Virus record (IMG/VR): IMGVR_UViG_3300031576_000001
Coordinates: 62,001-126,000 of that record
Length of the DNA stretch: 64,000 bases
Reading direction: 5' to 3' (one strand)
The notes under the pieces are model-generated. The model was not told the origin of the DNA and made no database searches. It saw only the letters and a program-made list of their open reading frames with translations. Made by a program: the position numbers and the translations under genes. The number at the start of each line of letters is the position of its first letter. Position 1 is the first letter of the stretch. Below are positions 49-57,899 of the stretch, one piece after another.

Positions 49-369
49 ATGACAACCAACACCTTCAGCATTGATTACGCCGCGCTAGAAAAGTCTGTGG
101 CCGGTTCTCCCTCTGACTTTGACCTGTCCACCATGGAGGTTGCCTCCTCCTCGGGTACGGATGCTTTTCTGGGGCGCCGTACCCCCAAGACTGCCTCGTC
201 GCACAGGCTACGTGTTGCTTCTATAGATCAACTCAAGGGGTTTATGCGGCTGTCACAGGAGTCTTTGGTACACATGAGCACGCAAGACCTTTGGTTTGCT
301 CGCCGCGAGGGTGACGAGCTTGTACTAGAGCGCCTCTTTGATGACAACGGTAGCCCCTTGAAGGTTTTA
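49..369 (+). CDS. Small hypothetical virion-module protein (106 aa), ending at in-frame TTA 367-369
   Basis: ATG at 49. Reads ...NGSPLKV then TTA; next gene GTG at 374. The ORF track reads through to 399 and overlaps the next gene. Confidence 0.6.
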
Positions 370-373
370 CCCC

Positions 374-1684
374 GTGAGACAGCGAACCGCCAGAGCTGAG
401 AGCTTTCTACCCGCCCCGCCCCAAGAGGAGGGGGCAGGTTTTGGTGCGCCCGTCTCTGCGGGTGAGCGCAAGATACCGAAGAACTTCCCGTTTGACCCCA
501 AGGCATTGCAGCCTCTAGCCAGGACCGTGTGGGCGTCGTCGGTAGCCTTGGGTCATGCTCTCACGGCGTACCGCAACTTCAACAGGGTAAAATCCTCTTC
601 GGTGTCCCCGGACGGCTTGCTAGGCGGGCGTGGTTACGTGCTCAAGGTCACGGACCTACGCACTCGACTCTTTCGAGCCTGTGAGGAGCTATCGTCGGTG
701 ATTGACACGTTGCACGACGAGATAAATGCGCCTCACTGGCAGCCCAAGCTAGCGGACCTGGACGCTAACTCGGCTGAGGACATCCTTCATCTTCTCGACG
801 AAGCCGATTCAACCATGAAAGACCCCGAGGAGGAAGCCGATGAGAAGATCGACGACCTGGAGTCTGAAAATGACGGTCCTGGGGGCACGTCTACCAAGGA
901 GCGCTTTGGTGATAAGGAGACCCCTGGCTCGGATCTGCCCAAGGGGGGCAACGCTGACGAGCTAACCAAGACGCCGGGTAGCTCACGCAACAAGCTAGCC
1001 TCTTGGGACTATCAGCCCGCGACCAACCCCAAGGACACCTGGACGAACATCCCCGGTGGACCCCGTGTGCCTTCTCTGGACAGGAATCTGATTGAAAACT
1101 CCCCTGGGGGCTCGGCTAACGTGGGCGAACCCTCTTCGGAGCGCAACAGGGAGCGCACCCGCGAAGAGACCGACGAGAACAAAGGTATCAAGTTTTACGC
1201 TGCCGTAGCCTACTCGGTACTACCAGACGGCTCCCTTGAGCCCCAAAACACGGTAGACGACTTCGGGCTTGGGTACGGCGCCAAGGGTCCAAACTACAAC
1301 CCCCCTCAGTCTGACGGCAAGGGTATTACCGGACCCACAAGCGGTCTACCCGCTGGACCCCCGGCAAGCAAGGTCAGTCCTTGGGATTCGGACTCGACCC
1401 TGGTAACGGAGCGCCAGGTAAATGACACCACGCGCCACGGACAGTCCAAGCTGCCCCAGCCCCCGCTGAACGTGTCCCCTGTCGCCAGGTCTGACTATTA
1501 CGAGGACAAGGGGCTCCAACCCCTTACCGCAGAGAGCACCCTACCCCAACCCCAGGACGCCATGACGCCAACCGATACCGATCTTCCTGGGGCGAGTGCC
1601 ATGTTTGACCCGCGCGATACCGGCTACCGTAGGTGGGACGTTATACCCGTGGTCAAGCCCGACCCCCTTACCAGTCGAAAGTTA
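374..1684 (+). CDS. Hypothetical Pro/Gly/acidic-rich head-module protein (436 aa), ending at TTA 1682-1684
   Basis: First part of track ORF 374..3907. In-frame AAG TTA CCC ATG at 1679-1690. Confidence 0.55.
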
Positions 1685-1687
1685 CCC

Positions 1688-4293: not shown

Positions 4294-4304
4294 CGGGAGT
4301 GTAC

Positions 4305-4835
4305 ATGCCACCAGATGAAAATGAACCAAAGACAGAATTGGTCGAGGACAAACGCCCCCCGGTTCTGGTGCCTATGTACCAGAGAACCCGAGCCGACCAC
4401 GTAAGCGCCCTAGTCAGAGCCAAAGATGCTCACGTTCGCACGGACCCTCTGGTCAAGACGGTAGCTGACAAGAGCCCCCCGAAAGACATACTCGACGGGG
4501 TGCTACTTGAGCTAGCCAAAGAGGCTGCCGCGCTGGGGTTCGCAATTCGCGAAGTGGACAAGACCGGGCGGGATAGCTCCAAGCTGTCCAGGTCAAGAGC
4601 GGACGTGCTTGGTAAAATAGCCGTGATTGCCGTAGACCGTAATCGCATGGGTACGGACGAGCTAGACCTCCGGTCAAGCAAGGTCCAACTCCTGTTCAAC
4701 CTCTGGATTACTAACCTGTCCAAGGTCGCCCGCGATACCATGACACGCGAGCAAGCTGACCTGTTCTTCTCCAAGCTGACCGCTGCCATGGCCGGCTGGG
4801 AGAATGAGGCAGAGTCCAACCTGAAAGGCGTATTA
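4305..4835 (+). CDS. Putative terminase small subunit (176 aa), ending at TTA 4833-4835
   Basis: Helical-looking protein directly upstream of terL; TTATG overlap with the terL start. Function inferred from position only. Confidence 0.45.
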
Positions 4836-7179: not shown

Positions 7180-7698
7180 ATGCCAGACTTCCCCCGTAAC
7201 CGAGACTGTCACGCCCTCTTTCGGGGGGACTCGTTTCCGTCCCTCATTGACAACAATCTTGTCAACGGGGGCTGGAGTGGGGGGTCTGGCGTAGAGTGGA
7301 CCACGCCGTTCAAGGATGAGCCTGTGGTAACCCGTACCGATGGGTACGCTTGCGGGTTCATCCTGTTTGGGTCGAGTGAGTCGTCGGACCAGTACACTGC
7401 CAGTACACACCAGAGCCTCACCTACCGCTACAGTGAGATTTGCTCCGGGGGTTGGCTTATCTCGACCCTCAGTTACGAGAAGTACACCTACGCCTCTCGG
7501 CTCATCCCCCCCTTGGTGCTCATCAATTACCTGCCCACAGACCGGCTGGTATTCTCCCTGAGAGGGTTGTGGACCAAGGAGGACGAGTGGACCCTCTCAG
7601 GTGACCCGAGGGCGCCTAACCAGTACTACGCCGGGGGTGTGGTACAAACACCCACACAAGCCACGTCCTTCTACCTCACCTTGCAGTCCTACCTCTTA
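7180..7698 (+). CDS. Paralog 1 of tandem triplet, possible capsid decoration/cement-type protein (172 aa, TTA stop)
   Basis: Shares YEKYTYASRLIPPL and FSLRGLWTKEDEWTLSxDPRAP with the next two genes; TTATG overlap at 7696-7700. Confidence 0.7.
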
Positions 7699-8213
7699 TG
7701 CCATCTACCTACCCCCCAAGAACCCGAGACTGCGTGGTCTCTTACCGTAGCGTCCGCTACTCGGTCAGGGTAGACCCTGCGGTCAAGTTCTGGCAGGGGG
7801 GTCAGGGCTTTCGGTGGGACGACTCCCCCCTGGACGAGATCCGGGTTACGTCCACGGACGGCTACGGGGCGGGTTTTGCGCTCTTCGGGTCAGATGAGGT
7901 CCATGACCAGCTAACGGCCATGTCAGGCAACCAGCCGTTGCACGAGTTCTTGACGCTGGGGGTGGGCACCTGGCTTATCTCGACCCGGACTTACGAGAAG
8001 TACACGCTGGCGTCGCGGACCATTCCCCCGCTCATTCCCTTGGTCTACGCGCCCAACGAGCCATTGTACTTCAGCCTGAGAGGGTTGTGGACCAAGGAAG
8101 ACGAGTGGACGCTTTCACTGGACCCGAGGGCGCCCTCCCCGGTGGTGGCTCGCGTACAGATGCCCCCCTCTTTGCTAACCGATGACTACCTCTCCCTTCA
8201 CACGGCGCTTTTA
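7698..8213 (+). CDS. Paralog 2 of tandem triplet (171 aa, TTA stop)
   Basis: Same motifs; TTATG overlap at 8211-8215. Confidence 0.7.
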
Positions 8214-13900: not shown

Positions 13901-14473
13901 CCTCGCACTCCGTACCCCCCGTGGCTCCCCGTGGACCACGTAACGGAGGGTGACGCTACCCGCCTCTTGGCTGACGCCAGGAAGCGCCTGGACCTCTCCG
14001 TTCCCGGTCGCGTACCGGACAGTGCGTACCGAGAGGCTCTAGACCTCGCGGTCTACACCCTGGATAACGGTGCCTTCTCTCGTGGTCTGCACCCCACCGT
14101 GTACAACGCTCTCCTGGCAAAACTCTCTGGGCAACCTGTAGCCCCTACCGACACCCTCTTGACCGTACAGAAGAAAGCCATGCTCACACAGAAACTCGCC
14201 TCTGACCTTCGCGCCCTGGCTACCAAGGTAGCCGAAGAAGCCCCCCAAGCAGCCTTTGAGATCGTGGAGCTAGCCGAGAAGGTAGCCCAAGACCAAGGCG
14301 AGCAGGATCAAGCTCCCGAGCAGAAACAAGCTCAGGACCAAGAGCAAGGGCAAGGTCAGCAGCAGAAGCAAGCCTACCTTACGCTACGGTCCCTAGTCAT
14401 CAAGACGGCTCATGCCTCTCAGGACAAGGCACCCTTCCTGCCTATACTCCGGCACCTCAAGGCTCAGGGCTTA
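10970..14473 (+). CDS. Large Pro/Lys-rich head-associated protein (1167 aa, TTA stop)
   Basis: Between portal and protease; low-complexity linker; only in-frame TTA found is at 14471, 8 codons before the track stop. Confidence 0.6.
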
Positions 14474-14514: not shown

Positions 14515-14889
14515 ATGGCTTTCAAGCTAGCAACACAAGACGCAGAGCGTATTCTTTCCAACCTGGACCAGGCGTCACAGGTCATCCAAGCCGGCGTAGA
14601 GGCAGGAACCCTCAAGCTGGCTTTCGAGGATGCCAAGGCGATTGTCAACTCACTGGATCAGATTGCCGACCGTATTGAGTACGGTACGTTTGGCAAGCAG
14701 TCCTTTGAGAAGAGGATGGCAGAGGTCATCAAGCGTGAGCCTGACGAGAAGTACATGGACACGTTCAAGAACCCCATGCAGCCCCACGTCACGGACAAGG
14801 ACGAGCCGTACATGGCCGCCTACTCGGATGACCAGTCCTCTGCCATGATTCACGGCAAGAGCACCACAGGGCGCCCGCTCGCTCCCTTA
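14515..14889 (+). CDS. Hypothetical head-module protein (124 aa, TTA stop)
   Basis: Ends GRPLAP-TTA, which leaves AGGAGG (SD of the next gene) in intergenic space. Confidence 0.65.
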
Positions 14890-14915: not shown

Positions 14916-15614
14916 TTGCTAGATTACTGGGCACTCGCCAAAGACTTTCACCAGGGGGACGCGGTTCAGAAGATCAACCCCGTCAACGGGAGTCTTGGTC
15001 CCTACGTGGGCGTTATCAAGCACGCTCACCCGGGGCTGGGGGTGCTTGACATTCAGTGGCCCTTTGGTGTCGAGCGCATTCACCCGGACGAGGTAGTCAA
15101 GGTCAACCCTGAGTTGATGTTGCACCTACCGCCCACGCTCAACCAAGTTTACGGTACGTGGGACACCCGGAGGCTGGCGTCCGCGAGAACCTCTTGGTAC
15201 CCCTTCCCGCCGGGCATCTATACGGACATGGCTCAGGCTTGGCACCACGGCAGGGGTGCTGTGGGCGTGTACGACGACCTTTACCGCAAGTACTCGGGGC
15301 TAGACGACCTAGTGCTGAGAGGCGAGGTCAGCAAGTTCTACACTGCCGCCAAGGTCTTTGGTGACTATCGTGTAGCTCACCACGCGGTAAGGACCGCGAG
15401 CTACTGGGTAGCCGAGAACCGGCAGTACAGGGTCACGGCGGACGAGCTAGACGCCCGTAAGCCCAGGTGTCCCAAGTGTGGGACACGGATGCGCAAGACC
15501 ACCTACAAGATGAAGAAGGGTGAGCGTCACCGCTTGCTAGCTTGCCCCAAGGATCTCTTCTTGGTGAAGACCACGGACATGCTTGGACCCGACGGAAAGG
15601 CAGTGGACTGGTTA
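14916..15614 (+). CDS. Hypothetical protein with C-terminal CxxC Zn-ribbon (232 aa, TTA stop)
   Basis: TTG start with AGGAGG upstream; RCPKCG...LACPKD; ends VDW-TTA at 15612. Confidence 0.65.
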
Positions 15615-15630: not shown

Positions 15631-18552
15631 ATGGCATTCCTCAAGTACGCCCGCTCCACGGTGCTGAAAAGCGACGTGAACTTCGATTCGTGGAACGATA
15701 GCCACAAGGGCAATGCGTTTCAGAATCGAGAGGCGCGTCGTATTGTGGTGGACCGCGTAAGCTCCAAGGACTACCTGCTTTCGCACTGTACCATTGTCGC
15801 CAGCGCCGACGCAGAAGAGTCAGGACTACCTCTGGGTAGGCACCTTGTTGACGGCTTTGAGGTCAATCGCCAGTTCTCTGACTTCTACGTAAAGCAAGAC
15901 TCTGAACTTTTTTTCAACAACAACCATGATGGGTGGTCTCGTCCGTTGATCCTGGGGACGTACAAAACATTTATAGGCTCCCCCTCATACATTGAGCACT
16001 GTCAAATACCAGAGTACGCTAAGGGTAAAATCCTAGACGCTGTAGCCAGGGATGTTGGCCCCTCAGTTTACGTTGACATTCTTGTGGGTACAGAGCGCAA
16101 GCACAAGCCGCTTATCGCTGCAATTCTGTCGAGAAAGATCAACGCCCTCAGCATGGGGTGTAGCATCCAATTTTCTTGCTGCACGCAATGCGGTAACGTG
16201 GCTGCGGACGAGACCGAGCTTTGTTTTCCTCCTGGGACTAGAGTGCTTAGGTCGGATGGCCTCTACACTCCGATAGAAGAGTTGGTCTCTGGTGATGTGG
16301 TTCTAACACACAAAGGAAACGCGCGTACTATCACTGAGACCACTTCTAGAGACTACTCTGGGGAACTAGTGCAACTCCGTGTTGACGGCGTGCCCACACC
16401 ACTACGATCCACACACTCCCATCCGTATCTTGTTTTCCGCCCGAAGACTGTTTGTGCTTGTGGTTGCGGTCAACCCCTAGCAAGAACGGTAGAGCACAGG
16501 AGAGGAGCCGCTAAGGCATTTGAGAGAATGTATCTTCCTGGGCACAACACTCATGAAGGCATTGCACAACACAAGCTAGTTTCTATCACTCCTGAATTTG
16601 TAGCGGCGCGAGACATAGCGGAAGGAGACTATCTAGCCTTTCCTGTGACTGGGGAGTTCTGCAATACGCCGGATGGCACCGAAGAGAAAGCTAAACTCAT
16701 AGGTTACTTTGCGTCAGAAGGCTCATTTATTAAAAGACGAGGTAAGCGAGTCGGGGTTTCATTTGCTTTTGGGGCTCACGAGTCAGAAACTTTGGTAGCT
16801 GATGTTGTAAAACTTTTGGAGTGCGTCTTTGGTGGGGTTAGAAAGGCGCCCGTTGTGCTCTGGGAGGATGCTGTCCAGAGGGATGGTACACTGCCTGTAA
16901 AACGACGCTCAACTAGCCGGGTGGTCCCTGAAGACCTTACTTGCCCATCGTGCGCAGCGCCCTCTGTGTACTTGAGAAACGCTTCATTCAAAAAAGGATC
17001 TCAGTGCTACCAGTGCAAGGTATGCCACAGGTCTTTTGTACTCGGTGCAGAGCGATATAAGCGGGCGCGTGTGTACCAGAGTGGAAACTCCTGTGACGTG
17101 CGTTTCTTGTGCGACAAGGCCGCCGACTTTTTCTATCGGCACTGCGGCGAATACGCCTCGACGAAGAGACTATCACCCGAGGTGATGTCGTGGCCACAAG
17201 AGCTACAAAGACACGTTTTGTGGACTTGGTTGTGTGGTGACGGCTCCCAAACTTCTGGTGAGGGTGTGAAGGGCACGAGCGTATCCTTTAACTTGATAAG
17301 TCAAATGCACCTCATCGCGGCAAGGTGTGGTCTTTATGCTAGGCGCGCTGTTGTCTTTGGTGGGCGTAGTGTTGCCGTGGGGGATGTCGTAGGGTCAGAT
17401 GGGATTGCAAGATTGCGGGATGCACGGGGGTGGCTGCCTACTTTTGTATTGGTCCTTCCGGCGCCTCAAGACCTCAAAGGAATTCTACGGTTCACAGACA
17501 AAGCACGTAAAACTCTTGCTCGCGTTACGTCGGGATACAAGCGGGTGGGTGATTACCTGCTCTATCGTGTTCGTAAGAAGTCTTGCGTTCCATACTCTGG
17601 TAAAGTTTACAATGTGGAAGTGGCTGATGACCATTCTTATGTGGTTGATGGTGTTGCAGTACACAACTGTAACCATATCAAATTCTTCAAGGGTAACTAC
17701 TTCATTGACCCTTACGGTAAGAGGCGCCGCGTAGGAGAGTTCTGTGGACACGCCTCTGACCTTGAGTCTAACAAATTCGTTGAAGCCTCTTGGGTGGGTA
17801 ACCCCGCTTTCGATGGCGCTGTGCTCAGGAACATCCTCAACGCCAGTGACTTTGATAAGACCGCCTACGGCAACCCCGACACGGTGTTCTCGTTCCCGTC
17901 CGTGTCCTTCGTACCCCCCGCAGGCGTCAAGCTAGCTAATCAGCAAGACGACCCCTTTGCTACGCCCTCTCAGGGTGACGCTGGTGCGGGCGACAGCAAA
18001 GCCAAGACTGAGAAGCCACCCCTAGAGGACGCCGTGAAAGACCTTCACGACACCCTCAAGGAAAAAGTGGTCGAGAATGTGCGCAAAGAGCTAGACGACG
18101 CCACGGGGGACGCCGCGCTCAAAGTCACTCAGTCTCCGCAGAACGAAAACGAGAACCTGATCAAGTCAGCCGCTAGCTCGCCCCTCTGGCGTAAGCGGGT
18201 GGCTTTCCTCTCCCCGTACCTCAAGAGCTACACGCCCTCCTTTAATAGGAGGCTGCTGGCGGGCTTGATTAGGGTACAGGCTTTTGGGTGGGGAAATCTC
18301 AAGACCGCAGGCTACGCACCCGAAGAGGTCTTGGTTCTGTCCTACCTCGTTGACCGAATGAAGGGCAAACCAGCCTTTGCCGGGGAGCGTAGGCTTTACG
18401 CCGCGCTTAGCAAGGCTGACCTGAACGCCCCTTGTCACTCGGTTTCCCTCTCTCTCGGTAGACCGCTGACCGCTACGGAGCAGTCCCTTGTGCTTGAAAA
18501 GTGCAACCTCCTCCAAAAAATACACGCAAACTCACTGATACAATCAACCTTA
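15631..18552 (+). CDS. Putative prohead (maturation) protease precursor containing an intein (973 aa, TTA stop)
   Basis: Between portal and scaffold/MCP; LSMGC and FVEASWVGNPA motifs resemble assemblin/HK97-type proteases; only in-frame TTA is at 18550. Confidence 0.65.
16222..17667 (+). mobile_element. Intein (482 aa) with LAGLIDADG endonuclease and extra Cys-rich inserts
   Basis: Starts CFPPGTRV, block B STHSHP, LIGYFASEG and LWTWLCGDG motifs, ends VYNVEV...VAVHN followed by Cys+1. Confidence 0.92.
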
Positions 18553-18569: not shown

Positions 18570-19802
18570 ATGACTCGTCGTCGCACTACCTGGGCTGCTT
18601 ACCAAAAGACAGCCGACCCTTACCTCATGAACCAAGATCACGTCAACCAGCAACCCGGTGCGGGCGACTACCTCACGGGTGACCCCTCTTCGTGGAAAGA
18701 GGACGTGAACCCCGAGAACCGTTGGGAAGATGAGTACAAGGGCGACCAAGTAGCCCGTGACGAGATTGGCATGGGCGAGATGCGCTCCGAGACGTTCAAC
18801 CACCCCGAGAAAACTGCTAACATGGATCGTGACTACCTCCTCAAGAAGGCCAGCGTTTGTGAAAAGGTAGCCCGCCGTATGCTGGGCAGGACCGCCTCGG
18901 ACGCGGCTATCGAGGACCAGAGCCTAGCCCTCATGGACCTCTCCGATGCTGACCTCCTCGGCACCTATGACCGCCTTGCCAATGACCAACAGGGTCAGGG
19001 TCAAGAGGAGCAGAAGCAAGCTCAGCAGCAAATGCCCGCTCAAGGGCAACAGCAACAGGGTCAGCAAGCTCAACAGCAGCAAATGACCCAGGCTCAGCAG
19101 CAAGAAATGCAGGCTCAGCAACAGGCAGAGCAAGCCATGCAACAGGCTATGCAAGCCATGGCTCAGGGCGACCAAGTTGTCGCTGACCAAGCCATGCAGC
19201 AAGCTGTTGACGCACAGTCGAAGTGCGCCGGCATGACCGTAGCCAAGGCTGCCTCATTCGTGGCTCGCAAGTTTGCCACCCTCATGGTCAAGGCAAACCA
19301 GGGTCAGCAAATGCCCTTCCAGGGTCAGCAACAAGCTCAGCAGGGGCAACAGCAGCAAATGCCCGCCCAGGGTCAGCAGCAACAGGCGCCCGCGCAAGCC
19401 CAGCAGCAGATGCCTGCTCAGGGTCAGCAGCAGCAAATGCCGGCTCAAGACCAGCAGCAGCAGCAAGGTCAAGACCAGCAAATGCTGGAGTCGATGCTCA
19501 TGGAGGGTGACCCCGAAATGGCAGAATTTGACGTTGAGCTAGAGGCTCCCGAAATGGGTCTCGACGTGATGGACCAAGACCTTTCGATGGTCTTTGCGGG
19601 TCAAGAGGCTCAGGACGCTCAACAGGGTCAGCAAGCTCAAGAGGGTCAAAACAAAGAGGCTCGTGGCAAGACTGCCTCTCGCAAGCCCGTAGCCAAGCTA
19701 GGCGGCGCCCCCTCTTCGCAGACCATGCCGACCGACGTAGGCAACCTCTCTTCCATGTGGAAGTCGGCGCCCGACGTAAGCAAGGTCTTCTTCGGAGGCT
19801 TA
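18570..19802 (+). CDS. Gln-rich scaffold-like protein (410 aa, TTA stop)
   Basis: Between protease and capsid genes; QQMPAQGQQQQ repeats; ends MWKSAPDVSKVFFGG-TTA followed by a hairpin. Confidence 0.55.
18985..19480 (+). repeat. Imperfect intragenic tandem repeats encoding Q-rich (QQMPAQGQQQQ) units
   Basis: Repeated cagcaaatgcc(c/g)gc(t/c)ca(a/g)gg units; boundaries approximate. Confidence 0.8.
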
Positions 19803-20637: not shown

Positions 20638-21528
20638 ATGATACAGCAACAGACCCAAGTATCCAACGCTTACAAGCAAAAGGTCATCGGAGAGCTGATC
20701 AAGACCGCCGCCGGTCGCTCCAAGATCGCAGCCTCCATGATCCAGCCCCTCCGGCTGCGTAGGGACTACACCTCGGTCAACCGCAAGACGTACCTCGTCG
20801 AGCAGCTACCGGACGGCGCTCTGCCGATCTACGACAAAGACCCGGACGTTACCGCCTACGTGGTAGGCGAAGAGGGTGAAAGCATCCTGGCAATCCAGAA
20901 GCCCCGCAGGGTCATCTTCCCCCTGTTCGAGCTAGCCAGCAACCCCGAGATCCCCCTCACCCAGATCAAGGAGCGGCGTTTCGATCTAATCGAGCGCGCC
21001 CAAGACCTCGGTAAGGCTCAGATCCAAGCAGCAGAAGACGAGCGTGGCTTTGCCATTCTCGACAGCATAGCGGTCAACGGGTTTGACACACTGCCCGGCC
21101 AGACCAACCCCGACGTGAACGTGGTTGCCCCTCTGAGCCCCTCGGTGCTGGCAGACGCCTTCGCAGAGATCGAGCGTCACGACCTGCGTGTCGCCCGTAT
21201 CTTCATGAACGCCACGGATTACGCGGATATCCGTAAGTTCGGTCGCGACATTCTCGACATCGAGTCGCAAGCCAACCTGCTCAAGACCGGTCTGCAAGCC
21301 ACCCTCTGGGGAGCCCAGATCATCACCAGCCGCTTGGTCCCGGTGGGCTTTACCTACCTTTGCTGCGAACCGGAATTCTTCGGGCGCATCCCCGTGAGGA
21401 CCGAGCTCTCGGTTATCAGCGCCGACGATCCGAAGGCTCGCACGATAGGCTTCTCTATCTTCGAGAACCTGGGGATTGGGGCATTCAATCCGCGGGGCGA
21501 GTGCCGCATGGTCATCACCCGCGCGTTA
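20638..21528 (+). CDS. Major capsid protein (HK97-like fold, 296 aa, TTA stop)
   Basis: GAAAGGA SD; FELASNPEIPLTQIKERRFDLIERAQDLGKAQIQAAEDERGF pattern and position; ends VITRA-TTA-GGG-TGA. Confidence 0.8.
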
Positions 21529-25332: not shown

Positions 25333-26274
25333 ATGCAAACCATCACGTTCAAGTCGGGTGCTTTCCAAAACTTCGTTGCTGCTCAGAAGTTCCAACTGAA
25401 GTTCGCAGGGTCGGATGTTACCCTGGTACCGGGTGAGCCTTTGCGGTTTGATGGTATGAACGCAGAGATCAACGGGGCGATGGCGCCGTGCCCGACGTTG
25501 AAGGGTGCTCTCAAGTCGGGGTGGATTGTGCCGGAGGGCTCGGAGCAAGAGGTTGTGCGCCCTGTGTCGGGCAACATAGCGTTTCGCCCTACCCAGCAAA
25601 CGGGGAACAGTACGACGCCCCCTCTCAGGCGTCCAGCGGTTACCACGGAGGCTGATGAGCGTGAGGTACTCCGTGTGTCCCCTCGGTCGGCGGCGGTAGC
25701 TCAGAACAACCGAGACAAGCGAGCACAGACCTTTCAGAAGGGGCGCCTAGTCACGGACGAGAACGGTATGGAGGGCGTAGAGGTACGCTCTTTGCTCACG
25801 CCAGCCAAGCAACGCACGGAGCTAACGGCGACCAACGCGGGCTCGCGAATCATGCAGGCAGCAGCCCCCGTGACCGAGGCAGGTAGAGGCGTTTCCGAAG
25901 ATGAAATGCTAGCCCGGATGAGCCCCGAGGCTGCCTCTGTGTACCGTGAGAAGGTGGACGCGGCTCGCCAGCGGGTTGCCGTGAGAGAGGGTATCGAGCT
26001 AGAGGGGGTCCGTTTTTCCACGTCACCCAAGCCCCTCAATCAGAACCCCCTGGCGACCTCGGACCCGAAGATTCTGGCGGCGCGTGCCGCGTGTCCGCAG
26101 TTTCCCACGGACTACCCCCTCCTGGCCTCGGTACGTAAGAGGGTAGCCAGGCTGGTTTCTGACTTTGAGGATGACCACGCGGTTCTACGTGCGGCGCACG
26201 CCATCGAGGATGACGCTGGCAAAGAGGCGTTGGTCAAGGAGTTCCCTGACGTGTTCCCCTCGACTGGCTTCTTA
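25333..26274 (+). CDS. Hypothetical protein (TTA stop)
   Basis: AGGAG SD; TTA at 26272, 4 codons before the track TAG. Confidence 0.65.
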
Positions 26275-32899: not shown

Positions 32900-33103
32900 T
32901 AAGGGCGTCTCGCGCCAGAGAATGAGAGCCGCCTTGGTGATGAGGAAAGCCTCCTCGGGGCTGACGCCCTTTGCTGCCAGGTACGCCGGCAAGTCCTGCG
33001 GGTCCACGCCGTAGTCCAGAGCCATCCTGGCGCGGCGCATGAGCCTCTCGGTGTCCCCATTGTCTTCGTGAGCGAGGGGGCACGGGGAAATTTTGAGGTA
33101 CAT
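32900..33103 (-). CDS. Small hypothetical protein (TTA stop)
   Basis: MYLKISP...RETP-TTA; ending at TTA removes the overlap with the convergent gene. Confidence 0.5.
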
Positions 33104-33379: not shown

Positions 33380-34009
33380 TAACCAAGGGGGCTCCTGGGG
33401 CTCTTGGTTTTTCTTGCTTCGCCGGGCGGGCTTCTCCGTCACGACCCAGGCAGCACAACCGAGGGGGCTCCGCTGTTGCAAATCCTGGTAGACACGCTCG
33501 CCGGCTTGCTCAGCCTCGCTCCCCTTGCCGTAATCGTACAGAGCGTCCATCTGACGCACCGAGAGGTGGTTGGGGTAGCGCCTCTCCTCGTCCTTCTGGT
33601 TAAGCCACTCTTCGATCTGCGCCTTGATGCTCTTCTTGAAGTCGCCCCGGGGGTTGGTACGCATACAGCCCCAGCACAGGGCGTACAACTCCTCGAAAGG
33701 CAGCGTGAAGAGGGAGCGCTGCCAGTGCTCGCTCCAAGAGGGCATGACGCCAGCCGACCACGCGAAGTGCCAGGACGAGGCATTCTCAACCCACTCCTCC
33801 ACGGAGAGCCACGCGGGCAGCGTGACGGGCAGAACCTCGTAAACCTTCTTCTCGACGAGACGGTCAGCACAGGGGATCGTGACCGTCTCGTCGAGGTTGA
33901 CTTCGCCCTCGACGTAGACCCCCATGGGGCTGCGGGGGGTAGAGGCGTTCTCCCCGTGGGCACGGAAGATGACTTGGTGGGTAGCGAAGAGGTTTTCGGA
34001 TGTGGACAT
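33380..34009 (-). CDS. Hypothetical protein (209 aa, TTA stop)
   Basis: GC3-rich ORF; ends EPPW-TTA. Confidence 0.65.
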
Positions 34010-34939: not shown

Positions 34940-36175
34940 TAACCAGGAACCGTCCCGTATACCCTCGGGTTTCGTAGCCACGGGCGCGCTCGCCCCGGGG
35001 GACAGCCTTTGGTTGTCCGTGATCAGGTGCCACCCCTTTTGAAAGCCTAGCTCGGTCAGGGTTTGCAGGTTGGCTAGCAGCACGGAGCCCTCCAACGCCT
35101 TGCTGTTCTCTTGGTAGTGCTCGAACCAGCGGACCCCGTACTTGCCATACACAGAGGCAGGCGTGGGGGTGTAGGGTGGCTTCTCGCCCGTGACAATCTG
35201 ATAGCCCAAAGAGTTACACAGGTGGACGTAGACCCTCTCCGAGTTTTCCGTGTCCCACACGTCCAAACCAAACTCGTCCTCTTCGATAGCCTGGGTCATC
35301 TGACCCCCAGCCGCCATCCCCATGTCCACGTTGAGCGACGCCAGCATGAAAGCACTGGTCTCTTCTGTGCCCCGCTCCATGTCGCAGTTGAGCCTGGTGT
35401 CCAGGGTGTAGTCACTGAGAGCTATCGCCCCCTTGGTCACGTTCTCCCCCCAGGCGCACCCAATGGGTACCGTGCTCGACTCGAAAGCGCTGTAGTTCAC
35501 GGTCATGCCCCCGCTACTCTCTGAAATGGTTGTGATGCCACCCTCGAAGGACTGACCCGTACCCCCCCCCTTGCGACTCCTGGTAAAGCCCCGGAAAGTC
35601 TGAGCCATGACAGGGAAGCGAGCCTCGTAGACTTCGCGCTTCATGGGGAAGACTTCGATCTGAAGACCCCCGAAGCTCTCTTTGCCCGAGAGTTGAGACT
35701 CCACCGTCCAGCCTTGACCCAAAGGCGCCGCTACGAACTGGCGGATCTTCCCCTTCTCTACGCAGAAGCCGTCAATCCAGGGCTGCTTGGGGGCGACCAT
35801 GTAGTCCTTCTCACGCAGCCCCGCGGACCACTCTTCCCCGGTCACGGCTGACCTCATACCCGCCGCCACCTTGATCGCAAAGGGGTAGTGCGCCCTGCGG
35901 TCACCCGCGTACCCTGCCTTGAAAGCGATGTAGAGCGCCTCCGCTTGGTACATGGGTAGGAAGATACCCCCGTGTTTGTTCCACTCGGGGGGTACGCGGT
36001 CCTTGTAGCGGTCAACCTCCCTGAGAGGGAAGGCGCCCAGCCCGGGAGGTAGCCGGTGGGTCTCGTCGTTGTCGGGGAGCCTCAGCGTGCGTTGAAAATC
36101 CAGGGTGAGGTTTGCGTTTGCGTGCCCGACCTTACCGGAGAGGTCAAAAACAAGGGTTTCATTGTGTATCCTCAT
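34940..36175 (-). CDS. Conserved hypothetical protein (TTA stop)
   Basis: FQRTLRLPD...LPPGLGAFPL...LPMYQAEA family recalled from bacteria and fungi; ends RDGSW-TTA. Confidence 0.7.
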
Positions 36176-37190: not shown

Positions 37191-37388
37191 TAACGAGTAG
37201 ACAGTGACCGGCTGGTCGTACCCCACGGTCACGTCGTAGCGCTTTGTGCCGTCGTGCAGGGTGAGGTACACTTTGCCCTGGCTCTTGTAGACCTCCAAGA
37301 CTTCGCCCTTGGCGACGCCCTCGGGGAGGTACATCTTTACGATCTCAGCCTTGTAGACGTGGGCGGCACAGGTTTCGGTGGTGTTCAT
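37191..37388 (-). CDS. Small hypothetical protein (65 aa, TTA stop)
   Basis: First half of the same track ORF; ends TVYS-TTA; downstream of motif copy 3. Confidence 0.6.
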
Positions 37389-39075: not shown

Positions 39076-39941
39076 CTACTATTGAACGTAACCAAATACG
39101 TGCAGCATACCGGACAGGGCGACTAACCACCTGGGCTGTAAATAAAGAAGGGCAACGAGAGCTTCAACCTATCCAGGCTGTACACCAACACAACTTGCAG
39201 TCTGATGACTTGTACGCCGTTACCACAACACGGGGCACATCGTATATGACTGGGGGTCACCGGGTATTTCGCACCCCCACATTGAAGGTAGAAGCGTGCT
39301 CTTTGACGCAAAACTTCACTGTCCTTGGCGAAACCATCGTGACCTCAAGACTTGTCGGTAAAGCCAGAACGGTCTATGACTTGACTGTAGGTGTGTGGCA
39401 CAACTTCAGGTTGTGCCGTAGTGGGTTGGTGGTGTCAAACTCACCGGACCAAAACTACCGCTTCGTCCCCCCCTCTAGGGAGGCTACTATCTCTCAGTTC
39501 AATCGTGTCTTTGGTTTTCTGTGGGAGGATTACGAGATGGACGAGTATATTCAGCGCTCGCTCGACCTGATCATCGCGTCCCCACCTCGTACACCTTTTG
39601 CCAGCGTCGAGCAAATGATAGTGCAGAAGAGGGAATGGACAACACTGTTGCTTACAGGTGCGGCAACATTTGCAATAAGGGCAATGATGCTAAACTGGAT
39701 TGCGAATGAATTTGATTTTTCCGTGGGGGGTATCTCTCTAAACATAGAGAAGTCGTCTAAGTACGAGAGTGCGAAAGGTAACTTTGAAGAGGAGTTTACC
39801 CGCCAGCTAGAACAAAGTAAAAAAACGGTACTGATTATCAGAGGGCTACAGCAGCCCCGTTTCGGAATCGGCGTGAGATCCTCCTTCGGGAGTTTTGTGG
39901 GTAGAAATGTGGTAACCCCTCGTAAATTCATAGGTTTCTTA
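39066..39941 (+). CDS. 125-aa C-intein fused to the C-terminal half of the fractured gene (TTA stop)
   Basis: TGGH (block B), VYDLTV..WHNF (block F), VVSN|S junction at 39440/39441; ends PRKFIGF-TTA. Confidence 0.78.
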
Positions 39942-41423: not shown

Positions 41424-41591
41424 TAAGCCTGGTCTGTCAGTGCTAGCCGTCACGGGGCATACCCCGCCTCTACGCAAAGCGTGCTTGGTCTCTCTGCGTA
41501 GCCACCTGTGGGCTTGTCTCTTCAAGAAGCCCTTGGTCTTGCTACCACACCCCCGGCACATTTTGCAGCTACAGCTAACGTAAGCTCTCAC
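41424..41591 (-). CDS. Small Cys/Arg-rich protein (55 aa, TTA stop)
   Basis: VRAYVSCSCKMCRGC...KRQAHRWLRR; bounded by in-frame TTAs at 41610 and 41424. Confidence 0.45.
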
Positions 41592-42910: not shown

Positions 42911-43237
42911 TAACCCCCGTGCCCGCTTCTCAACCGAGCGTCGCTTCTTCCTGCGACGCTCCATCTGGGTCATCTCCACGTCCTCCAGGCGAGCAAAGAG
43001 GGCGTCGTCCACCTTGACCTCCTTGAACCTGTCGGTCTGGTCACCCTTACAGCCGTGCAGAAATACAGCACCACGGTAAAGCGGGTTGAGAAAGAGGTAA
43101 AGGGTGGTATCGGGTTCGTTGTCGGTCCACGCTGCCCAGCGTGATAGCGTCCCTTCGGAGGCGAGGTCTACTTCCATGGCGAGGTCCGGGTGGAGGTTGC
43201 CTGTTAGCACAGCGTCTACTATACCCCGGGACAGCAT
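42911..43237 (-). CDS. Hypothetical protein (TTA stop)
   Basis: Ends KRARG-TTA, 4 nt before the ATG of the next gene; start at 43237 or 43177. Confidence 0.5.
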
Positions 43238-43550
43238 GACAGACGACAGCGCACCAAAGGCCCTGCTAACCCCCCTCGACCCGGAAAGCCTCATGGCGCT
43301 ACAGAGGCACCAAGAGATCCGAGCCAAGATCGCCCACGATATGCTTGAGCTTGAGCAAGAGAAGGTCCGTTTGCTTGTCCTAGCCCAGGGCTTCGATAAG
43401 GAGGCACACTCCCTCTTCGCCAAGCTGCTTACCGAGAGGGGGCAGAACGCCGACGCCAAGGTCTACGTAGACTTCAAGGACGGTCTACTCAAGCCTGTAG
43501 GCGAGCCAAACGTCCACTCCTTAGCTAAGCCCCCCTATCCCCCCCTCTAA
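43236..43550 (+). CDS. Small coiled-coil hypothetical protein
   Basis: MTDDSAPK...; restarts the + strand structural run. Confidence 0.55.
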   Translation: MTDDSAPKALLTPLDPESLMALQRHQEIRAKIAHDMLELEQEKVRLLVLAQGFDKEAHSLFAKLLTERGQNADAKVYVDFKDGLLKPVGEPNVHSLAKPPYPPL

Positions 43551-43553: not shown

Positions 43554-44891
43554 GTGGTTTACGCCAGGGACAGAAACCCACCCCCCACCCTAGAGTACCG
43601 AGCTACCCCGTGGCCGCTCCCTCCCCTTGAGGTATTTATGACTGGTGGGGTACCAGGGGTGTATGACCTACACTGGACACCCCCAGCGATACTCACCGGC
43701 AACGGGGGCTTCTGCCTTGTGGGGGTCAACGTCTACCGTAGCTTTGACTCGGAGTATGGCCCGTACCATCGGATAACGGAGCTACCTGTGGGCTCCCTGT
43801 ACTGGCAGGACCGGACGGGTAACGAGCTGGTTATCGAAGAGGACGTGACCGACCGGGTGACCCTCAAGGGTGACGCCGGTTCTTTCCCTCAGAACCCACG
43901 GTGGGCTTTCCAGGTCAGGTACCCTCCCATTGTCCGAGAGGGTAGCCAGGCTACGCCTACCCGCATACCACAGGACGTGAGAGCCTTCGTGGACGGGGTA
44001 GAGACTGCCGTGCTAGCCGTCTGGGGTGACACGGGGGAGGTCGAGATTGACACCCACCTGTACCCTAACGTGACGTACCAGACCCTCGACAAGCCACTAC
44101 TGCCCTCTCCGGGGTCTCGGGTGACCGTGACCTACCGCAGGAACCGTTCTCTCTTGCGGACGGACTTGAACACAAGGGTCTTTTACCGTGTCACCTCGGT
44201 AGCCTACCCGGCTTCTTGCTCCGCGCCTCACCAAGAGGACTTGCTAGAGACCCCTTTGGACCGTGCCCCGATGGCTTCTACACAGGAGACGGAAAAGCTG
44301 GACTGGGTATGGCGCGACGCGATTGAGCGCAACCGGTGGATTCTAGAGCAAGGCGGGGAGCGCGTGAGGGTCTTTATCAAGAAGACCGTGGGCGTGCCGT
44401 GTTTCTGCTTCCAAGAGCCCAGACACAAGCAGCCTCTAGCTGACTGCCGGGACTGTTACGGGTCAGGAATCCTTGGGGGTTACGAGGGACCGTGGGATAT
44501 ACTCATTGCCCCTGACGACGCTGAGCGACGGAAACGACAGAGTGAGAGGGGCAGGACCATTGAGCACAGTTACGAGACCTGGACAGGGCCGTCACCTCAA
44601 CTGGACCAGCGAGATTTCCTGGTCAAGTTGAACGGCAGGCGATACTCGATAGGTGCCGTGCGTACCCCCACAGCAAGGGGGATGGTCTTGCAACAGCACT
44701 TCACAATGAGTCAGCTCGACGAGAAGGACATACGCTACAGCGTCCCTCTAGGTAACCCCGTCAAGCACGTAGCTACGACGTTCACGCCGCTTTTCGCGCC
44801 ACCACCCCCAGACATTACCAACCACCCCACCGTGCCCGAAGAGATTGAGCTAAAAGGGCGCACCCGGGCGTGGGTTAACACCTCGTACTTA
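43554..44891 (+). CDS. Putative neck/head-closure protein (TTA stop)
   Basis: FnIII-like start, CFC...CRDCYGSG Zn motif, DQRDFLV...YSIGAV OB-like segment; ends WVNTSY-TTA. Confidence 0.55.
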
Positions 44892-48475: not shown

Positions 48476-49615
48476 ATGTACGCCTACCTCCTCTCCCCCT
48501 TGAAGCGTAGACTCCTCTTGGAGCTTCAAGAGAGCTTCACAAGACACCCGGTCTACCACAAAATAGTCCCCTTTATCCAGAACAGGTTCGCTTTTGATGA
48601 GCGCCCTCAGTACGGGATCGTCATGAAGGGCGGCTCTGTCACCCCGGTTCAGCTAGCGGCAGACCACCATTTGGGGACCGTCGTGAGTCACGTCATGCTG
48701 GCGTACTTCGGTCAACCGGTCTTCCCTCTGGAGTGGGTCAGGGAAGACACGGGGGCAATACGAGCCAACCGCAACGTCATGCCTACCCTCCCGGGCGTGT
48801 ACTACCTGGAGGTTCTACAAGCACCCACCGACCCTCAGCGCCCGGGTCAGTTCATCATTGACCCCTTGTTGACGGTGACCGATGAGTTTCTCTTGCAATT
48901 CGAGACGGGGCTGGAAACCAGCGTCACCCTAAAGCACCCACCCCTCTCAGGGACGCTCCGTGTGTGGGAGAACCGCAGGACTCTTCTCAGAGAGGGGGTG
49001 GACTACACGGTAGACTACCCCACGGGCACCCTTACCCTGTTGACCCCCTACCGAGCCCGAGCGTACCTCACGGCGGACTATCGTTACCCTGTGGCGAGCA
49101 TTGGGCCCGTAGACTTCTATTGGAACCGAGCGGACGTGTCCACGCTCCCCGGCGTGGTCCTGGCTTTTGGCAAGCGTGCCAAGAAGGGTGACAAGGTGGG
49201 CGTGGTTGTCTACCCAGACCGAGTAGACACCGCCAGAGCCTACGGAGGGCGTATCGACGCCAACTTTGACCTCGACGTGATCGCCCGGGACAGTAACCAA
49301 GTCGAAGAGATAGCCGACTACGCCCTCATGGCCTTTTGGTATGAGAAGCGGTCCTCACTGTCTTTTGAGGGTATCGAGGTCATGGAGTGCAGCATTTCCG
49401 GGGAAAGTGAGGACGTGTACGACGAGGCGGGCGATGACTACTATTACCAAGCCTCTCTGTCGCTCAGGGTTCAAGCCGACTGGGAAGTACACGTACCGCT
49501 GCCGCTCACAATTTCTCGCGTCACTCCCGAGCCAAAGCCCCTCGCTGGCGCTGGCTTGTACTTTGCCGCGCACCCCGTGATCGTCGGGCGGAATAACGAC
49601 TACGAGCGCCTATTA
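48476..49615 (+). CDS. Putative tail completion/terminator-type protein (TTA stop)
   Basis: Upstream of sheath; FDLDVIARD...EEIAD pattern; ends YERL-TTA-GGG-TAA. Confidence 0.5.
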
Positions 49616-49688: not shown

Positions 49689-50126
49689 ATGCCCAAGTAC
49701 ACCTTCGCGTGCCCGGATTGCGAGCTACTCTTTGACCGTACCCTCAAGCTAGCCAGCCACTCAGAGCACCCCTGCCCTCTTTGCAAGAGGCTAGCCCCAC
49801 GCCAGTGGTCAGAGCAAAACTTTGCAGCCTCTTTCGCGGTCCCTGCTAACAAGCCTACAGGGAACACGGGGGTACACGACCTGGATAACCCTACCGCAGA
49901 CAAAGCCGTGGGACGGTCTGCTTTCTCTCGGTGGGAGTCCTACGAGGGGCGCAAGGAAGTCAAGGAAAAGGCTCGCCAAGAGGGCGGTACACACGCACTC
50001 ATCCGTCACGACGACGGGCAACACACCGACTACGAGCCAATGACCGCCCTTGGGCTTGACGCCCATCGTAAGCTCGCCAGGGAAGCCTACAGCAAGGCAA
50101 AGAAATCTTCTATCCTACCCAGCTTA
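49689..50126 (+). CDS. FmdB-like Zn-ribbon protein (TTA stop)
   Basis: MPKYTFACPDC...CPLC; ends ILPS-TTA-GGG-TAG. Confidence 0.6.
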
Positions 50127-56438: not shown

Positions 56439-56663
56439 ATGACTACCAAGGTTTTCAGCATCGAGTTCGAGGTCCACGGGCTCAACCACGTCATCAACGG
56501 CACGGTCGAGGGCACCGCCGTTACGGTCGAGGAGGTTGGTGTCGAGTCGAGGCGCACCAAGACCGACAGGTACGTCTCCTGGTACAACGAGTTCACGAAG
56601 GACGCCTTCGTCGCGGAGTTCTCCGACAAGATCGAGCCGCTGGCGCGCAAAGCTGCCAAGTTA
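56439..56663 (+). CDS. Small hypothetical protein (74 aa, TTA stop)
   Basis: Very GC3-rich up to ARKAAK-TTA; ending there removes the overlap with the next gene. Confidence 0.6.
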
Positions 56664-56691
56664 CCCGCCCCCCGGTGTACCGTAGGCTCCC

Positions 56692-57339
56692 ATGGCTAAG
56701 AAGCGCGTCACGGACTGGGCGGAACCCGCCATTGTTCACCTTGACCAGTGCGCGGGGCGACAAGTCATGGGGTACTTTGTGCGCCCCTCGACTACCTTGG
56801 TAGTGACCCGCCAGGAGTGGTGCGTGGTCCCCCAGAGAGGGTGTTACGCCAATTTCCTCATGAAGGACTACGTAGTCCTACACGACATGGGCAACGAGGA
56901 CAGGTCACACCTTACCCCCCTCCTACAGCGAAAGCTGGGTCTCAACCTGAAAGCCTCTTCGCTGGCGGTTCACAAGGAGACGGGGCATGTTTTCCAGTGC
57001 GAGTGGACGCACGAGGGGGACGAGACCTGTTGTGCCTACCTGGACCCTCTACCCTCCAGCCTCATCGTACCCGCCCCATACCGGAAGGGGCTCCTTGTGA
57101 GGGTGGATACCAAGCGACCCTGGGGGTGGTGGTTGCACGAGAGGGAGCTACACGACTTCATGAACCGAGAGATAGGCTACCGTGACCTACGCCGGTCTCT
57201 TGGTGTCAAGCTCTACGTGGACCAGATCACGGTTTGCGTCGAGCCGGTGTACGACGCTCACGAGCGGATCAATTTTCAAACCGTCACGCATGACAGCGCG
57301 GACCAAGGCACGGGCAAAGAGGGCTCTGTATGCCTCTGA
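56692..57339 (+). CDS. Hypothetical protein (215 aa)
   Basis: Clean ORF. Confidence 0.55.
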   Translation: MAKKRVTDWAEPAIVHLDQCAGRQVMGYFVRPSTTLVVTRQEWCVVPQRGCYANFLMKDYVVLHDMGNEDRSHLTPLLQRKLGLNLKASSLAVHKETGHVFQCEWTHEGDETCCAYLDPLPSSLIVPAPYRKGLLVRVDTKRPWGWWLHERELHDFMNREIGYRDLRRSLGVKLYVDQITVCVEPVYDAHERINFQTVTHDSADQGTGKEGSVCL

Positions 57340-57899
57340 GCCCCTCATTTCTCAAACCAGTGGGCGTAGCGCCCAAGGAGGGTGTAGCCGTGGGTGTTGA
57401 CTTTACAGCCAAGTTGTACGTGGGTTTCATCGTGTACGAGGAGGACTTCTGGACACACGCGACCGGGGAGCCTCACTGTCCCGAAGAGGGTCACCCTACA
57501 CCCAGGGGGGGCGCTATCTTCTGTGACCAGTGCGGGCGCAAGCTCATGCGTACCGTGGGTGCGAGTATACCCACCCCAGGGTTTCAGTATTACCTCTCGC
57601 TAGACGGGTTCAGTGCTGAGGAGGTCTGGCGAGGGTGGGCTACGGTGTCGGACAGTGACCTACACTTTGTTGACGTGCGCTATAGAAATCAGGAGCCTGA
57701 CAAGAGGTACCTGTGCCTCTTGGTGGGGTCCACGACGGCTTTCTACTACGAAAACTCGGGCAACGTGGTACACCCCCGGGACATGGTAGCGGAGGGCTTC
57801 ATGGTGTCGGGGTTGGCTGAGAGGGTGAGAAACCTCTTGGCGTGCCTGGGCAAGCCGGTGAATGACTTGCGGTGGGTCTTGTCGGCGGACGTGCTTTTA
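57330..57899 (+). CDS. Hypothetical protein with Zn-ribbon (TTA stop)
   Basis: HCPE...FCDQCG; ends SADVL-TTA; start may be GTG 57390. Confidence 0.55.

Follow-up and report, generated by a model that had tools for sequence, protein, structure and literature searches.

UUA as a probable fourth stop codon in phages and in a candidate Polyangiaceae lineage

We analysed a window of 64,000 nucleotides (nt) from a jumbo tailed phage with a G+C content (GC) of 57.7%, namely, positions 62,001-126,000 of a 322,633-bp contig from JGI metagenome 3300031576 (Ga0247727_10000022, the same as IMGVR_UViG_3300031576_000001), in which the leucine codon TTA behaves as a stop codon. Positions refer to this window unless another sequence is named, and statements on the contig concern the portion that was read, from 17.7 to 163.3 kb (~145 kb, 45% of the contig). 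Our reading, to which we assign a probability of roughly 0.8, is that UUA serves as a termination signal in the expression of the phage genes, most likely as a property of the host that arose through codon capture. Judging from the sequence, the stop codons of this phage would be TTA, in about 40% of the window genes, together with TGA, TAA and TAG, and a lineage of Polyangiaceae probably uses UUA as a fourth stop codon, as do phages infecting it, which appear to come from two or more separate families. In three or more phages UUA is kept out of gene interiors and stands where genes end; it closes the tag of the transfer-messenger RNA (tmRNA) in phages and in six bacterial metagenome-assembled genomes (MAGs), and no fewer than two aldolase genes of bacteria end with it.

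The evidence from the phage genes themselves is positional. The standard-code gene set of the window consists of 63 open reading frames (ORFs) with 20,145 codons, in which 32 in-frame TTA codons were observed versus about 109 expected from position-specific composition. As many as 27 of the 32 (84%) lie within the last 30 codons, a region that holds 9.4% of all codons (binomial P = 2e-23), while the sense codon with the next strongest end bias reaches 18%. Two of the five remaining TTA codons sit in fusions of neighbouring genes (1682 and 37191), one is at 4833, and two lie near ORF starts, a few codons past the first possible start codon and upstream of the likely real start. In genes modelled with four stop codons, TTA occurs 0 times in frame versus 148 times in the +1 and 131 times in the +2 frame, and thus the trinucleotide itself is not avoided. 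Related codons are common in frame, including CTA (305), TTG (296), ATA and GTA. Stop usage under this model (66 genes) is TTA 26, TGA 19, TAA 14 and TAG 7, and with TTA as a stop, gene overlaps of more than 25 nt drop in number from 9 to 5, while the overlap summed over the window drops from 706 to 310 nt.

The same picture extends beyond the window. Between 34 and 154 kb of the contig, 43 in-frame TTA codons were found among 36,986 codons; 33 fall within the final 30 codons of a gene, and the others lie near gene starts, near gene ends or at junctions. No internal TTA was found there in Pfam-matched domains, and codon usage gave no hint of a division into early and late genes. Over these 120 kb, 36 of 108 genes end in TTA. 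The stretches between TTA and the next standard stop have a coding log-odds of -0.10 per codon, compared with +0.14 just upstream of TTA. Three junctions take the form TTATG, in which stop and start overlap (4833, 7696 and 8211), start codons lie 3-30 nt downstream of many TTA sites, and a ribosome-binding site with a start codon is found at several junctions. Read with the standard bacterial code (table 11), the sequence has a coding density of 93-94% with long intact ORFs, and in-frame standard stops inside genes were not seen.

A sequence-only reading of the window had proposed 27 sites at which TTA ends a gene. An in-frame TTA is present at all 27, and an independent four-stop gene model recovered 25 of them as gene ends, together with a new one at 43521 (Table 1). 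At the other two sites, 41424 and 42911 on the minus strand, the codon is in frame, but the ORFs that hold it score poorly and were not called as genes. That reading had also seen no internal in-frame TTA in a scan of more than 7,500 codons, which agrees with the absence of in-frame TTA in the window genes and in conserved domains over 145 kb; its remarks on the abundance of CTA and TTG, on the continued use of TAA, TAG and TGA, and on the reduction of gene overlaps likewise agree with the counts given above.

Two further candidates were tried on these sites and rejected. First, a +1 frameshift into TAA or TAG, following the model of AGA/AGG in mitochondria, does not fit, as the next base is A or G at just 11 of the 27 TTA codons. 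Second, no common flanking motif, as might come with methylation or miscalling, was found around the TTA sites. It is also very improbable that TTA is an avoided rare leucine codon, or a regulatory codon of the bldA type, whose short tails are translated. TTA is indeed the rarest leucine codon in GC-rich genomes, and UUA-dependent regulation is described for Streptomyces and its phages, with UUA-linked bypassing in the latter (PMC10732093). However, avoidance cannot place 27 TTA codons within the last 30 codons of genes, and the tails are unconserved, lack a coding signal and overlap downstream genes.

Orthologs in phages that use the standard code provide an independent view of where these genes end. 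We compared 80 loci around the capsid gene and extrapolated the stop positions of the orthologs for ten TTA-ending genes of the window. The TTA column is the commonest ortholog stop in six of the ten genes, most clearly in the capsid gene (78 of 79 loci; the fractions for the other five, from 31/45 to 7/12, are in Table 1), and in a seventh (10970-14473) the commonest stop also falls there, although in just 7 of 15 loci; one of the ten had too few alignments that reached the gene end. At the stop column of the capsid gene, 81 matching loci have TGA in 48 cases, TAA in 17, TAG in 11 and TTA in five, the last being four copies of the window contig and one relative, L082, which is described below. 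No relative has a sense codon in this column, and the protein alignment agrees. In addition, the 1177-aa ORF that is split by the TTA at 1682 corresponds to two separate adjacent genes in LR745208.1, an uncultured 485-kb phage that is the GenBank record nearest to the window phage. The earlier expectation that homologs of standard-code phages would end at the TTA column is thus borne out, and a mere avoidance of TTA offers no reason for such a match.

The relatives themselves treat TTA as an ordinary codon. In more than 50 of them, with 82-89% capsid identity, TTA is internal to genes at 0.2-23 per 1000 codons depending on GC and shows no bias to gene ends; across these relatives and LR745208.1, about 10-13% of in-frame TTA codons lie within the last 30 codons. 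The complete LR745208.1 has 277 in-frame TTA codons in a total of 141,704, and 13% of the 277 fall within the final 30 codons of a gene. In the window, CTA is about three times as frequent as in the relatives (15 vs ~5 per 1000 codons), with frequent GCTAGC-like CTAG strings, a feature not seen in L082. This excess may come in part from replacement of TTA by CTA, though it is larger than the likely ancestral TTA content.

The phage also carries translation genes, in an array located upstream of the window at about 21.2-31.3 kb of the contig (locus L100, 3510-13557). ARAGORN found 38 tRNAs in it, and two more were added, a Thr(UGU) tRNA from Rfam and a probable Cys(GCA) tRNA read by eye, with a weak Rfam match; in the former, the anticodon stem has a C-C mismatch at its base, whereas the Cys(GCA)-like one has a very small D-loop. 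The leucine anticodons present are GAG, UAG, CAG and CAA. A tRNA-Leu(UAA), whose absence the sequence-only reading had named as a point to check, was not found in this array of about 40 tRNAs within the 17.7-163.3 kb read, whereas LR745208.1 has five adjacent leucine tRNAs (CAG, GAG, UAG, CAA and UAA). A leucine set lacking UAA is what a UUA-free code predicts. The array does serve other rare A-ending codons, through Ile(UAU), Arg(UCU) and Leu(UAG), and it holds no suppressor tRNA; tRNAs for AUA, AGA and CUA but none for UUA are difficult to reconcile with TTA being just one more rare codon.

Within the same array lies a tmRNA (L100, 12557-12934), which matches Rfam RF00023 over its full length (model 1-374) with 52.8 bits (gathering threshold, 47), and which has tRNA-like ends, the G3-U pair of the acceptor stem and a CCA end. 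Its tag ORF, ANDNVEAAPLALAA, encodes A-N-D-N-V-E-A-A-P-L-A-L-A-A in the usual register and is followed by TTA rather than by a standard stop; the next standard stop lies 27 codons further on, within the structured part of the RNA. Tags of tmRNAs typically end in ...LAA or ...VAA right before the stop, and these C-terminal residues are the degradation signal. A tag that ends in ...ALAA and then UUA is therefore evidence, independent of the genes for proteins, that in infected cells translation terminates at UUA, and again something for which codon avoidance gives no reason. The tag ORFs of two further phage tmRNAs (L143 and L144) are likewise closed by TTA. The tmRNA had no match to GenBank phages in blastn, and a fragment consisting of a T-arm and CCACCA directly precedes its 5' end.

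One related phage has a protein similar to a release factor. LR745208.1 encodes, at 63468-64058 on the minus strand (L102, 13468-14058), a 197-aa protein that resembles release factor 1 (RF1), with a GGQ motif but without domain 1, in which a deletion of four residues removes the PxT loop that reads the codon. The family, of about 195 aa, has 2,886 database hits; the window contig is absent from the best 120 of them, and a search of IMG/VR with this protein returned its own contig only. Two tRNA-like features of LR745208.1 were recorded as well, namely, an ARAGORN tRNA with the anticodon UUA, which would read the UAA stop (L101, 7629-7705), and a tRNA with an 8-nt anticodon loop and the anticodon 'ttta' (L103, 42332-42406); this genome otherwise looks standard-coded, and 116 of its genes end in TAA.

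These observations bear on the possibility that UUA is an unassigned, 'hungry' codon at which ribosomes stall, the peptide then being freed by tmRNA or by a rescue factor that acts independently of the codon (ArfB or PrfH-like). A missing tRNA-Leu(UAA) in the phage array, a phage-encoded tmRNA and an RF-like protein without a codon-reading loop in relatives are all what such a mechanism would use, yet we consider it quite unlikely. The tag ORF of the tmRNA itself ends in UUA, so that tmRNA cannot resolve UUA; tagging would degrade the capsid, the protease and about 40% of the phage proteins; and the TTATG overlaps resemble the usual coupling of termination and reinitiation. Moreover, known rescue systems require an empty A site.

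The trait is not confined to one phage. First, L082 (Logan SRR13388588_343; 55 kb, GC 50.5%) belongs to the same family as the window phage, and its capsid homolog (P0098) has an extra 'LSG' end; 13 of its 14 in-frame TTA codons, among about 6,300 codons, lie within 50 codons of an ORF end, while in relatives of comparable GC, TTA is scattered along the genes at 3-9 per 1000 codons. In a concatenated tree of three proteins, the window phage and L082, both on long branches, stand together opposite 45 standard-code relatives (Shimodaira-Hasegawa-like approximate likelihood ratio test, SH-aLRT, 87), a grouping that would fit a single ancient origin of the trait but may also stem from long-branch attraction. 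Second, IMGVR_UViG_3300033121_001619 (126 kb, GC 57%), which was located via its tmRNA, has TTA 0 times in frame versus 13 and 22 times out of frame in the 22 kb examined, and three TTA codons just ahead of the start of the next gene or of an ORF end. In all 50 relatives of this phage, identified through a protein about 9 kb from the tmRNA, TTA is internal; these relatives are other contigs than those related by the capsid, and the family thus appears to differ from that of the window phage. Third, two contigs of GC 65%, L142 and L143 (435 and 231 kb), have too few TTA codons to judge and are suggestive only.

Some candidates for further cases were discarded. In the viral contigs L140 and L141 the tmRNA tags run on to ...RVAA and a standard stop, and TTA is internal to genes. 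A search of IMG/VR and JGI metagenomes for the capsid C-terminus followed by TTA returned the phage itself, together with chance or out-of-register matches that use TTA internally.

Could the pattern be an artefact of sequencing or assembly, such as TAA miscalled as TTA? We regard the chance of this as close to negligible. An ENA assembly (ERZ27247320 k141_3047311; 322,662 bp) holds the same sequence, rotated and reversed, which suggests that the phage genome is probably circular or circularly permuted, and although the two assemblies have different break points, a single 18-bp indel is their sole difference in the stretches compared. This indel (L092 vs L093) falls in the ORF at 19762-21048, of 428 aa, or 422 aa in the other assembly. 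Furthermore, the signal depends on the reading frame, no flanking motif is shared among the sites, TAA still ends 14 genes of the window, and the same pattern recurs in unrelated samples, phages and bacterial MAGs.

These MAGs may represent the host lineage. We searched one genome per GTDB species for a tmRNA 5' end followed, after 80-110 nt, by a sequence encoding Ala-[Leu/Val]-Ala-Ala-TTA. Matches were obtained in 25 genomes, compared with a rough estimate of about 26 chance matches based on the degeneracy of the pattern. Six of the 25 are MAGs of Polyangiaceae/Myxococcota (contigs CAYNEK010000036, JALOQB010000140, JANWXX010000071, which belongs to GCA_025057345.1, JADLFU010000008, CAZSDX010000231 and CAUJFL010000099); the other 19, outside Myxococcota, have no tmRNA at the match and are about as many as chance predicts. 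Three of the six tmRNAs are confirmed by ARAGORN or Rfam (142-152 bits), and the other three run off the end of the locus but have the same tags in the same register. The tags read ANDNAVPFALAA in three and ANDNVEAEEI[LF]AVAA in three, each then followed by TTA, and translation beyond it would be unconserved and would not end in AA. With the second type the phage tag has ANDNVE...AA in common.

Protein-coding genes on such contigs point in the same direction. In the MAG SKYG56 (JANWXX010000071, GC 62%), a stretch of 13.8 kb has a single in-frame TTA, located within a standard-code ORF of 539 aa, whose first part is a complete class I fructose-bisphosphate aldolase of 306 aa (DeoC, model 2-229 of 229); after TTA there follow AAGGAG, a 6-nt spacer, ATG and a complete dienelactone hydrolase (model 2-217 of 217). 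The NCBI gene table for this MAG has no gene at the aldolase locus (L146, 11099-12140), presumably because table 11 runs the aldolase into the next gene. More than 100 aldolase orthologs from Sorangium and other Polyangiaceae, with 78-88% identity, have 306-308 aa. When twelve orthologs were aligned, the six whose length is standard ended at the TTA column of SKYG56 or no more than two residues from it, and four metagenomic ones have an 'L' followed by low-complexity extensions exactly at that column. For one of these (P0278; contig Ga0373631_0066955, GC 70%) the codon at this position is TTA, the sole TTA among about 120 leucine codons of the contig, and reading through it would make the aldolase overlap the convergent MoaA gene by 250 nt. 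The contigs with TTA-ended genes carry ordinary chromosomal genes, such as those for PlsB, Hsp33, MoaA/C/E and a protein kinase, and are hence bacterial rather than misbinned phage.

The bacterial contigs matter for a further possibility, which we deem unlikely, namely, that the recoding is imposed by the phage on a host with the standard code, by disabling the host tRNA-Leu(UAA) and supplying a UUA-reading release factor of its own. Jumbo phages of this family do carry translation genes, with about 40 tRNAs and a tmRNA; the short RF1-like protein of LR745208.1, with its GGQ motif, missing PxT loop and thousands of relatives, could be taken for such a factor; and, with 45% of the contig read, 177 kb lie beyond. 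However, that protein is present in standard-code relatives, and it is thus not specific to the trait, nor are its best 120 homologs on the window contig. In-frame TTA is lacking from all gene classes and on both strands, including replication genes that should be expressed before a phage factor could act, and the trait is common to phages with different sets of relatives. Chromosomal contigs of bacteria have TTA-ended ssrA tags and aldolase genes. A code change that belongs to the host cell and not to the phage is the most likely reading of these data.

Several points weigh against this conclusion. In two of the ten window genes compared with orthologs, the relatives end 3-8 codons ahead of the TTA column, which makes those C-termini uninformative. 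A tRNA for Trp is likewise missing from the phage array, and a gene for tRNA-Leu(UAA) could be elsewhere, in the remaining 55% of the contig or in the host. A phmmer search with RF1 and RF2 of Escherichia coli against six-frame translations of 17.7-163 kb of the contig found no release factor, and in LR745208.1 it gave just the short RF1-like protein. On the bacterial side the evidence is thin, comprising six tmRNAs, two verified genes and three inferred genes, and at the GC of the 8-kb MAG loci (62-73%), TTA is so rare that statistics have no power. What connects the phage with Polyangiaceae is a similar tmRNA tag and the shared TTA only; their tmRNAs are about 50% identical, too low for host assignment by itself.

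Bearing this in mind, we propose that the host is a high-GC lineage of Polyangiaceae (Myxococcota), and that the change followed a codon-capture route. UUA would have become vanishingly rare in this GC-rich lineage, after which tRNA-Leu(UAA) could be lost, leaving UUG to tRNA-Leu(CAA). The free UUA may then have been captured by a release factor whose discrimination at the second codon position was altered such that U is accepted there, much as has been suggested for mutated mtRF1a of algal mitochondria (PMC6821328). Phages of such hosts would have to purge in-frame TTA but could use it freely as a stop, and, being more AT-rich than their host, they may have drifted toward TTA as their commonest stop codon. 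Taken together, the match with ortholog stops, the lack of internal TTA, the set of leucine tRNAs and the agreement of the assemblies support the earlier proposal of a sense-to-stop change in this phage and probably its host.

Table 1. TTA codons at gene ends and annotated phage genes in the window (sites are based on an in-frame TTA and on the four-stop gene model unless stated otherwise)
Feature	Position	Strand	Gene or ORF	Remarks
TTA	367..369	+	ORF 49-369 (106 aa)	next gene starts with GTG at 374
TTA	1682..1684	+	374-1684 (436 aa) and 1688-3907 (739 aa)	splits 1177-aa standard ORF; ATG 3 nt downstream
TTA	4833..4835	+	ORF 4299-4835	TTATG with terL start at 4835; 151-nt overlap removed
TTA	7696..7698	+	ORF 7180-7698	TTATG overlap with next start
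TTA	8211..8213	+	ORF 7698-8213	TTATG overlap with next start
TTA	14471..14473	+	1167-aa structural gene 10970-14473	commonest ortholog stop (7/15)
TTA	14887..14889	+	ORF 14515-14889 (124 aa)	ortholog stop here 31/45; next standard stop +11 codons
TTA	15612..15614	+	ORF 14916-15614 (232 aa)	ortholog stop here 28/46
TTA	18550..18552	+	intein-bearing prohead protease 15631-18552 (973 aa)	ortholog ends 7-8 codons earlier; variable C-terminus
TTA	19800..19802	+	ORF 18501/18567-19802	commonest ortholog stop (24/74); 0 at standard stop 27 codons later
TTA	21526..21528	+	major capsid gene 20638-21528 (296 aa)	ortholog stop here 78/79 loci
TTA	26272..26274	+	ORF 25333-26274 (313 aa)	orthologs mostly stop 3 codons earlier
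TTA	27620..27622	+	ORF 26339-27622 (427 aa)	second TTA 3 codons downstream
TTA	29117..29119	+	ORF 28478-29119 (213 aa)	ortholog stop here 12/25
TTA	29749..29751	+	ORF 29161-29751 (196 aa)	ortholog stop here 7/12
TTA	32900..32902	-	ORF 33133-32900 (77 aa)	
TTA	33380..33382	-	ORF 34009-33380 (209 aa)	
TTA	34940..34942	-	ORF 36175-34940 (411 aa)	
TTA	37191..37193	-	ORF 37388-37191 (65 aa)	followed directly by GAAGGAGG and the ATG of the next gene
TTA	39939..39941	+	ORF 39066-39941 (291 aa)	
TTA	41424..41426	-	low-scoring ORF 41735-41325	weak case, not called by model
TTA	42911..42913	-	low-scoring ORF 43459-42815	weak case, not called by model
TTA	43521..43523	+	ORF 43104-43523 (139 aa)	absent from earlier list, added by four-stop model
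TTA	44889..44891	+	ORF 43554-44891 (445 aa)	
TTA	49613..49615	+	ORF 48476-49615 (379 aa)	
TTA	50124..50126	+	ORF 49632-50126 (164 aa)	
TTA	56661..56663	+	ORF 56439-56663 (74 aa)	
TTA	57897..57899	+	ORF 57330-57899 (189 aa)	
Gene	4835-6841		terminase large subunit (terL)	
Gene	9107-10927		portal	
Gene	15631-18549		prohead protease with intein	
Gene	20638-21525		HK97-type major capsid	
Gene	47366-48427		Volactin-family actin homolog	Pfam Volactin, E = 6e-61
Gene	57964-62769		UvrD helicase with intein	

As for the phage itself, over 2,000 homologs of its capsid protein (82-89% identity) are present in databases, many of them on contigs of 300-600 kb, and among cultured phages the closest is Tunturiibacter phage Tunturi_5 (50% identity). 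A megablast search of positions 1-25000 against GenBank phages gave zero matches, and no tRNAs or Rfam families were found within the window itself. A homolog of the Volactin-family actin, with 46% identity, is also encoded by LR745208.1.

Inteins and homing endonucleases break up several core genes (15631-18549, 21658-24384 and 57964-62769 in the window, and 4636-7518 in L097). The prohead protease carries Hint/intein domains, the intein of the UvrD helicase has LAGLIDADG, as does the ribonucleotide reductase, and in one further ORF LAGLIDADG occurs together with a DNA methylase domain; several endonuclease genes that stand alone, HNH, Vsr-like and TnsA-like, were also found. A protein of 585 aa (54627-56381) has a Ros/MucR zinc-finger domain, of a family typical of alphaproteobacterial regulators. 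Many genes start in a C-rich context similar to 'caccATGgc' without a Shine-Dalgarno sequence (e.g. 14515, 15631, 18567, 44932 and 56692), and a clear GGAGG precedes other starts (the 37191 junction and 14916). The tRNA array is adjoined by a gene for a 519-aa protein with a weak TROVE domain (Ro60-like, RNA-binding; L100, 1843-3402), and near it are genes for a ClpP-like protease, a GroEL homolog and a phosphoribosyltransferase; a metallophosphatase-like protein beside the array found no anchor in LR745208.1.

If the proposed code is real, no earlier case of sense-to-stop reassignment would be on record for viruses or for a cellular genome outside organelles, as far as our literature searches show. 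To our knowledge, the accepted code variants of bacteria and phages all yield another amino acid from a stop or a sense codon. For bacteria and phages, full-text searches of the literature found neither UUA described as a stop nor any other code of the sense-to-stop type, and those sense-to-stop reports that were found concern mitochondria only, in line with the lack of precedent suspected from the window alone. The code may have escaped large screens because tools such as Codetta, which was used in a large screen for alternative codes, cannot by design detect sense-to-stop changes (PMC9825746). Several consequences would follow. The specificity of bacterial release factors could naturally widen to U at the second codon position, and codon capture would have a living example in a large genome. 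Public gene calls for such genomes would be systematically wrong, with junk C-terminal extensions, false fusions, uncalled genes and false overlaps. A code barrier would separate these phages and bacteria from their standard-code relatives, with effects on host range and on horizontal transfer. A simple screen for further sense-to-stop codes is offered by the codon at which a tmRNA tag ORF closes, and the case would be of interest for the engineering of recoded organisms and release factors.

Among known systems, the closest are found in mitochondria. UUA itself is a stop codon in the mitochondria of Thraustochytrium (NCBI table 23). Further cases of sense-to-stop change are UUR in Pycnococcus provasolii and UCA/UCG in green algae of the Sphaeropleales, where the change correlates with mutations of the release factor mtRF1a and fits a codon-capture model (PMC6821328). 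As in the phage, the reassigned codon is gone from the interiors of coding sequences and stands at gene ends, and UUA is even the same codon; the mitochondria lack the cognate tRNA, as does the phage array. Mitochondrial genomes, however, are tiny, with a few dozen genes, whereas the present case involves a 322-kb phage with hundreds of genes, other phages, and apparently free-living bacteria with multi-megabase genomes and two release factors.

Phage recodings described so far go from stop to sense. Such phages, for instance Lak megaphages and crAss-like phages, resemble the one studied here in that they are large, have genes that table 11 misreads, and carry many translation genes, but the direction is opposite, since here no standard stop is read through and the array has no suppressor tRNA. 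The bldA system of Streptomyces has in common with the proposed code a GC-rich host that hardly uses UUA, and phages to which the decoding state of this codon matters; in Streptomyces, however, UUA is internal to genes and decoded as leucine by a regulated tRNA, while here it is never internal and lies at the stop positions of orthologs. Lastly, codons are known to be unassigned in Micrococcus luteus (UUA, AUA and AGA) and in Mycoplasma capricolum (CGG). The likeness would lie in the loss, under compositional pressure, of a rare codon and its tRNA, with which codon capture is proposed to begin. Nevertheless, those codons are unused rather than terminators, whereas TTA ends about 40% of the genes of the window and the tmRNA tag.

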